The notes under the pieces are model-generated. The model searched no databases, had not been told where the DNA came from, and saw only the letters and a list, made by a program, of their open reading frames with translations. The position numbers were made by a program, and so were the translations under genes. DNA of 11,940 nt from Selaginella moellendorffii (lineage: Eukaryota > Plantae > Lycopodiophyta): assembly GCF_000143415.4 (NCBI RefSeq), contig NW_003314410.1, forward strand, positions 279,228-291,167. The letters are read 5' to 3'. This document shows positions 609-3,600 of the stretch, piece by piece (positions within the stretch are counted from its first letter, which is position 1; each line of letters begins with the position of its first letter).

Positions 609-3600
609 ATGGGGGAGCCAAAGCAGGCCCGGATAGATGAGTACGAGCATTTGCCAAGCATTCGCTCTGAGATGTGGAACCATTCGGTGTGGAATGTGAG
701 GGAGCTGAAGGAACAGAGATACAGAGCAGCAAACTTCGATTCAGAAGACTTCGAAGGCTTGCGCGAGCTGCTGCTGCAGGAGGACAACACTCTGGAGCAC
801 GTAATGCTGTCCTGCGAGGGCTACCACAAAGTAGAGGGGTTTCTAGAAGCAGCTGTGTCCAAGCTAAGCATCCTTCGCATTAGAAATTACAAATTTGGCG
901 AGGAGGTGATTTGCAGCTTGGATGAAGCTATTGCTGATGCCAAGCACGAGAATATGCCAATCAAGCTCAAGACGCTTCTTCTAAATTCTTGTGTTGTAGA
1001 TTTAGATGCTTTAGCAGGATCAACACTTCCAAAGTATTTAGAACGTCTGGAGCTTTATAATTGCCGTTGCTCGCGCAACCTGGAGAAGCTGCTGCAAGAT
1101 CCAGCCTGCAAGATCTGGGAGCTGTCCCTCAATCAGAATGAATACTTGACTCCTGCCCTCTTCCAGGCTGGAACAAGTCTTCGGAAGCTTACGCTGGTCG
1201 ACATCCCAAATGATCAGGCTCTACTCAGCCAAATCTGCGGAGCAATAGAGGGCCTTGGAATTTCAAATGAGCCCAGCCGTCACGACATCTCCGTGCTGGC
1301 AGGTTGCATGAACAACAATGCCAACTCCAAGGTCTGGTTCCTGGAGTTAACACATTTAGATTTATCTTTCGCGCAGCTCGTGGGCCAGCTGCTGAAGAAC
1401 CCATATTGCAAGCTTCGAAGTTTCTCCTTGTTACCTGGGGTAAAGGTGAGTGGTTTTTTCAACATGTTCGTCTTGATATTGACACTCATTTTCTTAAGCA
1501 GAAAGAAAGCCCCTCCTCACGTGACCTTCATCTTCTCAAGGAGTATCAAGATGCGATTCTCAGCAATTTGGAGGCCAACTACAGCAGCCGGATCCAGAGA
1601 CTGCGCATTCGCGGGGAATGGGCTTCCAAACTGTTGGAGGACAGATGGTTGAGGGTGAAGTACCGGAATGCTCTATTTCAGAAGAGCCCCGTTCTTGCAC
1701 AAAGCGCTCCAGTCACACCATCAACTGCCAAGCTGTTCATGTGCGGCCACACTGCCTCGGGCAAGACCACCATCTCCACCAATCTGGTCCGCCCCTATGC
1801 AGCCCTCTGGCAGTGTGTGAAACCGCCATGTCAGGATCATGCATCAACGGTGGGAATTGAGAGGAGGACTCTCAGATTGGGAGAGGGGAAGAAACTCCTG
1901 ATTTACGATCTGGGAGGCCAGGAGGTCTACCACGCTTTTCATCACTATTTCCTCAGGGGCAGCGACAAAGATCTCTTCATGGTGGTGTGCAAGGTTGGAG
2001 GTCCTGGAGGTGAGATGAAAGCTGAGCTCCAATACTGGCTTCGCTTCATAGCGGCCCACCAAACTGCAACACCAGCTAGGAAACCCACCATTTTCTTAGT
2101 ACTCAACATCTTTGTTCGTGATTACCGTCTTTTCGAAGAAGCTCAAACAGCTGCGACGTCACTGTTCCTCGAGTATAAGGACAGGCTAGACTTTGTTCAG
2201 GGCCAACGTGATCATCACTATTTCGAGGTGAATGGGTTGAATGCTCGTCAGGTACAGAAGGAACTGAAGCCCAAGCTGGCAATAGCAGTGGGCGAAATGA
2301 TCAATGAAGTTCCTGTGATTCCCTGGACTTGTGATGAGGTTATCAGAAGGCGGGCTTCATCCACACCATGGTATCATATCCACACACGGGCACAAACAAT
2401 TGTCCAGCAGAGGGTGGTCGACCTACATGAGATGTCCAAGGCTTGGTTCCAGGGGGAGAACGAAGTTCAGGCATTTGCTGCACAATACACATTCATCTGC
2501 CTACATGACATGGGAGAAGCTGTCTACTTTGGGGCAGATGACACATATCAAAACACGGATCCAAACGACAAGGAAGCTGCATTGATTGTCAACAATGCAG
2601 TTCTAGACATGCCATGGTTTCTCCACACTGTGTTAGGAATTTTCATTCCTAAGCAAGACAGAAACGATACGATGAAGTGGGGGGAACCCAAGTGGTCTGC
2701 TGCGAAAGCAGTACAAGAGCTCAAAACACTTGGGGAGACTGCAGAGGGCAACATCTATTTCCTGCTCAAGCTGCTCTGTGAGATGGGGGTTCTCATTCCT
2801 GATGGCATGAGGAGCTGGGACATAAGGTGGTCAGAGCCACGAAATCGGCCAGAACACCTCATTGTGCCTGCATTATTGAGTGATGAGTTCACAGGATGGA
2901 TTGAAAGCGAGCAAACATATGATTGTTGGGGTCGGAGATTGCAAGCAGACGACACTATGAAGGGCTTCGTTCTTCTCCCATCAGGTAATTATGCTTTGAC
3001 TTGTTGGATTGGACTAATACTGATTGAAAGCAGGACTATTTGCGGTTATTCAAGCCAAGGTGAAGGAAATGTGTGACAGATGGGGCCATGGAAGTAAGAT
3101 TGGTGCTGGTTGGGTTTCCTTCCAAGAGGATCTCATTCAAGTTCTGGTGACTATTGGTGGGGATTATAAGCATTGGACAGATCGGCAATGGGTGGATATT
3201 ATGTTGATGGTGCCCAAGGAGGAAAAGAGGGGACTCAAAGGGGAGCAGTTCATGAAGGAGATACGAGATTGTGTAATAAAGGAAACTAATAGGGCCTGTC
3301 CTTTCATCAAGCTTGAAGAACATGTTTTGAATCCAGGGAAGGTAAGACAGTTTGGAAAAGCATCAGGACAACAGGGGTCATGCAGCAAGAGCTCTCGGGC
3401 ACTGCAAGAAGTTAAAAAGATGGTAGCTAGGGAGGGGTTTGATTATCATTTTACTTGGGATTTTGGTGACTCCACTAGTGCCATGGAACTCTTGATGCAA
3501 AGTGAAGTCAACGAGATTATTCAGCGATGTAAGGGTGTTATTGAAGAGGTTGTCACAGAATACAACCAGCACATAGTGCCAGTGTATCAAAACCAGCAGC

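Follow-up and report, generated by a model that had tools for sequence, protein, structure and literature searches.

Two tandem LRR-Roc-COR genes of Selaginella moellendorffii and the variability of their leucine-rich repeat exon

Two tandem genes and the changes in their LRR exon

The window analyzed here, a stretch of 11,940 nt from the lycophyte Selaginella moellendorffii, comprises two tandem genes encoding leucine-rich repeats (LRR) followed by a Roc GTPase and a COR domain, and a 128-nt stub of a third copy, as detected by BLAST of the window against itself. The segment 8776–11924 is a direct repeat of 165–3367 with 89.9% identity, and the two genes are named copy 1 and copy 2 in the following (Table 1). 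By protein search, copy 1 corresponds to LOC9652566 (XP_024522593.1, 1045 aa). The hypervariable part is exon 1 (609–1445), which includes the stretch 780–1445 highlighted in a first-pass annotation made from the sequence alone. Comparison of these copies with further members of the family supports site-specific diversifying selection on a periodic stripe of the LRR domain.

For the comparison of copy 1 and copy 2 nine repeats were set in the register LxxLxLxxN/CxL. Amino acid changes were found at motif position 7 in all nine repeats, at position 10 in six, at position 8 in four and at position 6 in none. The x positions (2, 3, 5, 7, 8, and 10) were changed in 26 of 54 cases, compared with 32 of 164 elsewhere in residues 62–279 (Fisher’s test, p = 7.6e-5). 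Over the whole exon, 69 codons show an amino acid difference and only 13 a silent one; at least two nucleotide changes are present in 21 codons, compared with an expectation of about one such codon from the flank divergence of 3.6%, and at codons 219–226 a patch of eight residues is swapped as a block. The pairwise dN/dS of the whole exon is 1.5, which alone is not significantly above 1 (p = 0.17).

The first-pass annotation had described changes clustered in and just after the LxLxx strands, an observation that is confirmed far beyond chance. It had also described the intervening helices as unchanged, and this was borne out at the protein level: the three helices named there contain no amino acid replacement and differ only silently, at codons 136, 141, and 204. 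Recent copying as the cause of their likeness is ruled out by these silent differences, which therefore speak for purifying selection. All peptide pairs that had been quoted occur in the alignment of both copies, and the peptide LFLYSCAV attributed to a third remnant is found in the translation of the stub (37–164). Two of the pairs, HVMLSCEG/HLFLCREG and LRIRNYKF/LGIILDKV, exist only in the ancestral reading frame of copy 2 and lie between its two frameshifts, so that copy 2 can no longer translate its versions. The counterpart of 780–1445 in copy 2, given earlier as about 9365–10015, is exactly 9361–10015.

Five more loci were collected from the same assembly (GCA_000143415.2), which are 83–90% identical. 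The reading frame is open over the full length in L001 and L003, is interrupted by two frameshifts in L002a and meets a stop at codon 556 in L004; L002b is a fragment that consists of the LRR only, and L005 matches copy 1 over 165–3850 save a 1-nt deletion at 2730. An intact open frame is present in only two of the seven distinct loci (L001 and L003; intact proteins XP_002992043.1 and XP_024525065.1). In total the family in S. moellendorffii consists of at least seven close loci and three more divergent lineages, a lower bound from the best 8000 word-sharing candidates, which were scored. The family is multi-copy and clustered with pseudogene turnover, as two copies and a stub in the window and five further loci illustrate; this agrees with the expanded birth-and-death family proposed earlier and goes beyond the few copies seen in the window.

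The columns that vary among the seven LRR exons are those that also vary between the window copies. On average, columns at motif position 7 contain 3.6 different residues, those at position 8 contain 2.9 and those at positions 1–4 contain 1.1–1.4. The pairwise proportion of nonsynonymous differences (pN) is 0.39 at positions 7 and 8 and 0.04 at positions 1–4, compared with a proportion of synonymous differences (pS) of 0.10 for the exon; this contrast needs no tree. Codon models were fitted with our own likelihood program (GY94/F3x4). For the seven exons, model M0 gave an omega of 1.45 (likelihood ratio test statistic, LRT, against 1 = 6.6, p = 0.01), and the comparison of M1a and M2a gave an LRT of 82.4 with 19.5% of the sites at omega 6.0; with a star tree the LRT was 105. 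When only the five uninterrupted exons were used and all codons at most two from a gap were removed, LRTs of 32.1 (M1a/M2a) and 32.2 (M7/M8) were obtained (p = 1e-7). The M7/M8 comparison, which the first-pass annotation had proposed as a check, supports the diversifying-selection pattern. The selected class contains about 19% of the sites at omega 5–6 and is concentrated at motif positions 7–8; its posterior averages 0.85 for position 7 and 0.69 for position 8, and is <0.06 for positions 1–4.

The N-terminal cap (609–791, codons 1–61) evolves fast as well (omega 3.0, p = 0.005), with hot codons 16, 19, 20, 26, 29, and 31. As a control, Roc-COR showed an omega of 0.77, which is not different from 1 (p = 0.13), and an LRT of 6.6; in exon 3 omega was 0.2–0.4 in most pairs. 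Within the Selaginella clade the LRR is 77% identical vs. 92–93% for the other parts; the respective values for six angiosperm orthologs of TORNADO1 (TRN1) are 68% vs. 71–77%.

An AlphaFold2 model of the LRR, based on a 17-row alignment (predicted local distance difference test score, pLDDT, 85.8; predicted template modeling score, pTM, 0.85), consists of ten short strands alternating with helices. Its best Foldseek matches are NLRP3/NLRP14 and ribonuclease inhibitor (RI) with E-values of about 5e-6, and the family profile matches RI with E = 4e-19. According to DSSP the strands span motif positions 3–7; the hot positions 7–10 are therefore the strand end and the ascending loop. Because equivalent positions of successive repeats stack along the solenoid, the variable positions should form one stripe. 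The selected sites at motif positions 7–8, at strand end and loop, would thus lie on one LRR surface, as assigned by motif position and DSSP only. RI touches its ligands largely via strand ends and beta-alpha loops. The ligand-contact region of RI is the region that varies in the Selaginella LRR; the likeness to RI and to the LRRs of animal NLRPs, the best matches in fold and sequence, is limited to the repeat type, and the domain context is unrelated.

Divergence mosaic, expression and decay of the copies

The raw difference between copy 1 and copy 2 is 13% in the LRR exon and 3% in Roc-COR. Jukes-Cantor distances (JC) are 0.037 for the upstream non-coding region, 0.144 for exon 1 (dS 0.105, dN 0.156), 0.044 for intron 1, and 0.30 for intron 2. 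Roc-COR has a dS of 0.038 and a dN of 0.029 and includes about 360 nt that are nearly identical (2500–2860), and exon 3 has a dS of 0.155 and a dN of 0.041. Counted over unchanged codons, silent sites of the LRR exon (13 of 137) are significantly more diverged than the flanks (p = 0.007–0.012); silent divergence amounts to 0.095–0.105 in the LRR exon vs. about 0.04 in Roc-COR and upstream, i.e., roughly threefold. For this reason the upstream DNA was rejected as sole neutral yardstick, by which dN would be about four times neutral. Each copy is thus composed of tracts that differ in age, the flanks probably being the younger ones. This points to conversion of the flanks and to exchange of LRR exons and not only to selected point mutation; the simplest reading is that promoter and Roc-COR were homogenized by gene conversion with the LRR exon escaping. 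With flanks that are probably younger, the unchanged GTPase is no evidence of stronger constraint.

The tree of exon 1 is star-like with weak inner branches. Among informative site pairs, 54% fail the four-gamete test, and a minimum number of recombination events (Rm, after Hudson and Kaplan) of 20 or more was obtained for the 837 nt. LRR variants therefore appear to have been reassorted among paralogs or to have arisen recurrently. The motif-position contrasts are unaffected by this reticulation, since they are tree-free. The reticulation, the threefold silent divergence and the block replacement at codons 219–226 could also be taken as signs that no selection acted, and that the pattern arose from patchy gene conversion, or from a hot-spot of mutation within the LRR exon, together with misalignment near indels. 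However, conversion and hot-spots would not track the LRR period, with changes at position 7 of every repeat and almost never at positions 1–4. Moreover, the signal persists without gap-adjacent codons and broken copies, and pN at positions 7 and 8 is four times the pS of the same exon. We consider this explanation very improbable.

The exon joints of copy 1 were read from contigs of public runs placed on 400–4600, namely three RNA-like runs and one DNA run. The DNA run contains neither intron joint, vs. both in the spliced contigs. One spliced contig equals copy 1 without mismatch over 1333–1443, where copy 2 is about 10% different; therefore copy 1, or a near-identical allele, is transcribed and spliced. 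A putative poly(A) site of the copy 1 transcript is indicated by one public-run contig, which ends in an A run after 4413. The NCBI isoform X2 of copy 1 omits 15 residues, VWFLELTHLDLSFAQ (1332–1376), which are exactly the beta-strand of repeat 8; no joint backing this skip was seen in the four runs placed on the copy 1 region.

Table 1. Features of the two tandem LRR-Roc-COR genes and the third-copy remnant in the window.
Feature	Position	Strand	Description	Basis
Third-copy remnant	37–164	+	start codon and 20 codons (45–104) joined to a 60-nt piece of LRR repeat 3 (105–164)	self-BLAST, translations
Copy 1 upstream region and 5' leader	165–608	+	counterpart in copy 2: 8776–9196	
Copy 1 exon 1	609–1445	+	N-terminal cap and ten RI-like LRRs, 279 codons	ATG and open reading frame (ORF), AlphaFold2 model, fold matches, selection tests
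Copy 1 intron 1	1446–1501	+	56 nt, GT..AG	spliced contig of public run
Copy 1 exon 2	1502–2984	+	linker, Roc GTPase, COR	Pfam Roc, hhalign to TRN1, LRRK2 Roc-COR match
Copy 1 intron 2	2985–3033	+	49 nt, GT..AG, phase 1	spliced contigs of two public runs
Copy 1 exon 3 to premature stop	3034–3851	+	TGA at 3849–3851; NCBI models stop here	paralogs and L005 copy have TGT (Cys)
C-terminal Cys/His module	3852–4352	+	167 codons, in frame past the TGA	comparison with paralogs and L005
Copy 2 upstream region	8776–9196	+		self-BLAST, alignment
Copy 2 LRR exon homolog	9197–10015	+	11 nt deleted after 9360, 4 nt after 9480; stop at 9422–9424 in the ATG frame	
Copy 2 intron 1 homolog	10016–10062	+	47 nt	alignment
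Copy 2 exon 2 homolog	10063–11521	+	indels of -10, -13, and +5 nt near start; stop at 10075–10077	
Copy 2 intron 2 homolog and exon 3 start	11522–11940	+	intron homolog 11522–11591 with 21-nt insertion; exon 3 leaves the window	alignment

The premature TGA strips the last 167 residues, a conserved Cys/His module, from copy 1. Over 165–3850 there is no base substitution between copy 1 and the L005 copy on scaffold GL377692.1; from 3851 on, 27 of 547 positions differ (L005:11070–11618; 4.9% vs. 0% upstream), and the very first difference, at 3851, creates the TGA. This abrupt change of ancestry at about 3851 therefore looks like a conversion or recombination breakpoint. The 3' segment of the window differs by 4.4–6.3% from every paralog fetched. 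The L005 copy carries another disabling lesion than the nonsense codon of copy 1, since the base missing from the A run at 2730 shifts the frame within COR, where a sequencing error is possible. L005 may be the other haplotype of copy 1 or a very recent duplicate: the two are 100% identical over 3.7 kb bar this deletion, the 128-nt remnant precedes the L005 copy as well, and the downstream structure is different. All contigs from the four runs show the L005-type letters at 3851, 4040, 4058, 4080, 4192, 4257, 4272, and 4295, giving TGT and not TGA at 3851; the window’s own 3' variant was not seen in these contigs, which drop rare variants.

Copy 2 is a multiply broken pseudogene, represented at NCBI by a 167-aa fragment (LOC112343413, starting with Met116) and a partial model (LOC9652567). 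A protein search with the LRR exon by itself, under a length filter, recovered this fragment only. Beyond the damage at the start of exon 2 its Roc-COR frame stays open, with 97% identity to copy 1. The indels form two groups, each of which sums to a multiple of three (-11/-4 within 9361–9480 and -10/-13/+5 within 10063–10116). The frame is regained after each damaged stretch, each with a stop, which may be chance (about 1 in 9).

Taken together, these lesions could mean that the LRR pattern is a fossil signal of past selection, and that the clade, and certainly the locus in the window, is now non-functional and drifting. This would fit the five or more frame-breaking indels and two stops of copy 2, the TGA of copy 1, the deletion in L005, the presence of only two intact loci among seven and the Roc-COR omega not different from 1. 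Against it, two full-length open genes persist, copy 1 is transcribed and correctly spliced, the framework positions still have a pN well below pS, and exon 3 remains at low omega in most pairs. For the clade as a whole we regard such a fossil signal as unlikely, though it is the most serious of the alternatives.

The spacer between both genes (4400–8775) is a patchwork resembling neighbors of paralogs elsewhere (an Exo_endo_phos/GRF-zinc-ribbon gene and an RF-1 gene). It also contains a diverged third copy of the upstream motif (4649–4778) and an N-terminal protein kinase fragment on the minus strand (7248–7538; Pfam Pkinase, E = 1e-11).

ROCO membership and relation to TORNADO1

The Roc domain was recognized by Pfam PF08477 with 33.6 bits in copy 1 and 35.1 bits in copy 2 (cut-off 27). 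Its motifs include the P-loop GHTASGKTT and the switch II DLGGQ, and G1 and G3 are invariant in the family alignment. In the G4 region, N-I-F-V-R-D at 2100–2125 (copy 1 residues ~478–486), the Asn does not vary among lycophyte and fern relatives, and the guanine-specifying Asp usual at +3 is absent. No direct Pfam match to COR was obtained for the family protein at E-values up to 1. When the family profile was aligned with Forsythia TRN1 (hhalign, 792 columns, probability 100%, E = 5.7e-48), the match extended from the P-loop as far as the C-terminus and passed through COR-A (721–873) and COR-B (897–1036) of TRN1 with probability 100%. Further matches of the profile are the LRRK2 Roc-COR chain 6vno, over residues 7–345 (E = 9e-12), and 4wnr. 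Neither NB-ARC nor NACHT was matched in Pfam scans of the window ORFs and of one family protein. These alignments support the assignment of the gene to the ROCO proteins of the TORNADO1 superfamily and hence the Roco identity recognized at first reading; several Selaginella proteins of the family are already tagged “ROCO family protein” in GenBank.

A tree with TRN1, which had been suggested as a check, was calculated from full-length sequences and rooted on Chara. Angiosperm TRN1 forms one clade and all Selaginella and Adiantum sequences form another, both with a Shimodaira-Hasegawa-like approximate likelihood ratio test (SH-aLRT) value of 100, where the TRN1 clade was sampled with six species and three further rows from a quick search of limited sampling. 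Fern and Selaginella lineages are interleaved within the lycophyte and fern clade, which includes at least four divergent Selaginella lineages. A simple TRN1 ortholog was therefore rejected, as the family falls outside the angiosperm TRN1 clade at this sampling; from the tree the family may be co-orthologous with TRN1.

TRN1/LOP1 has the same architecture of RI-like LRR, Roc, COR-A/COR-B, coiled coil and C-terminal domain, and two of the Selaginella paralogs are called “protein TORNADO 1” by NCBI. In contrast to the Selaginella clade, TRN1 is matched directly by the Pfam COR models, the divergence of its LRR does not exceed that of its other domains, and its G4 reads T-H-Y-D instead of N-I-F-V. 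TRN1 is low-copy and developmental (PMC11378527, PMC4104024) and works in patterning together with a tetraspanin (PMC4104024). The homology to TRN1, including the C-terminal module, and this patterning role would be in line with an endogenous partner of the variable LRR instead of pathogens, e.g., a rapidly evolving host protein with which the LRR co-evolves in a pathway of development or membrane trafficking like that of TRN1, or with a role in genome conflict. Yet angiosperm TRN1 lacks the LRR-specific excess of divergence and the Selaginella clade is separate from it. Tandem clusters, pseudogene turnover and a stripe-wise omega of 5–6 are typical of genes in host-parasite conflict. An endogenous partner is thus, in our estimation, a poor candidate explanation, albeit a better one than the absence of selection.

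Comparison with known receptors and proposed function

The family resembles plant nucleotide-binding LRR receptors (NLRs) in its tandem clusters, birth and death with many pseudogenes and sequence exchange between paralogs, as well as in the diversifying selection on solvent-exposed LRR positions and a P-loop NTPase adjoining the LRR. It differs from them in that the LRR is N-terminal and not C-terminal, that the NTPase is a Ras-like Roc with COR, with no NB-ARC or NACHT detected, and that no TIR, CC, or RPW8 domain was detected in the Selaginella family. The LRR-ROCO proteins of the brown algae Ectocarpus and Saccharina likewise form an LRR-Roc-COR family that has expanded and contains LRR sites under positive selection; for this family a role as immune receptors was proposed, not shown (PMC3341825, PMC11378527). 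They represent an independent stramenopile expansion with a different LRR subtype and different C-terminal parts. Their diversity is created by shuffling of single-repeat LRR exons of 72 bp and by alternative splicing (PMC3341825, PMC11378527), whereas in Selaginella all repeats lie in one exon and the diversity comes from substitutions at positions 7–10 and paralog exchange. Animal MFHAS1, likened here by layout only, has the simplest ROCO architecture of N-terminal LRRs followed by Roc-COR and was grouped with plant Tornado proteins by layout (PMC4104024). It differs in being a single-copy animal gene. We know of no hypervariable LRR in MFHAS1.

The best explanation of the data as a whole seems to us a diversifying LRR-Roc-COR family whose intact members are cytoplasmic receptors, which we hold to be probable with some reserve. 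The framework of the RI-like solenoid (motif positions 1–4 and the helices) is conserved, with pN well below pS, and the end of each beta-strand with the following loop (motif positions 7–10) forms a hypervariable stripe with pN about four times pS. LRR variants are reassorted among the paralogs, with promoter and Roc-COR kept alike most simply by gene conversion. Copies are often disabled, as in the multiply broken copy 2 and in copy 1 with its nonsense codon and lost C-terminal module. In intact members the variable stripe would serve to bind ligands that change and most likely stem from pathogens. Binding might be relayed via the Roc-COR unit for GTPase activity and dimerization to the conserved coiled coil and the Cys/His C-terminal module, in analogy to the LRR-NB-ARC logic of NLRs. 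An immune-sensor role is plausible.

Several points weigh against this proposal. The only studied homolog, TRN1, is developmental and shares the C-terminal module. The window copies are both defective, and so are most of their relatives. The LRR exons of copy 1 and the L005 copy are identical and give no sign of allelic LRR polymorphism, the clade seems to be under relaxed constraint to judge from the omega of 0.77 for Roc-COR, and with G4 lacking its usual Asp the GTP specificity is uncertain. On the methodological side, the likelihood tests come from our own GY94 code and not from PAML and include only seven sequences, the heavy reticulation of exon 1 (Rm at least 20) is of a kind known to inflate tree-based likelihood tests, and the surface mapping relies on motif position and DSSP and not on atomic coordinates.

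According to a review from 2014, ROCO genes among plants are present in flowering plants only (PMC4104024), and a paper from 2024 states that plants have one or two ROCO genes (PMC11378527). In our literature search no paper linking ROCO genes with Selaginella was found beyond incidental mentions. The present findings point to many ROCO genes in a lycophyte, belonging to a clade that also includes ferns, with an LRR that evolves like those of resistance genes. A more far-reaching proposal is that an expanded LRR-Roc-COR family, which is sister to TORNADO1 and was lost or never expanded in seed plants, serves lycophytes and ferns as intracellular immune receptors in which a Ras-like GTPase/COR dimer replaces NB-ARC; this we put forward only tentatively and consider rather doubtful at present. 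Since S. moellendorffii is reported to have about two NLRs (PMC3782705), ROCO immune receptors would, if the proposal is true, explain how it copes with so few, and the family would be a concrete immunity candidate for an NLR-poor lineage. If the intact members are receptors, they would represent a second, independent route of land plants to intracellular recognition, parallel to the one proposed for the ROCO proteins of brown algae.

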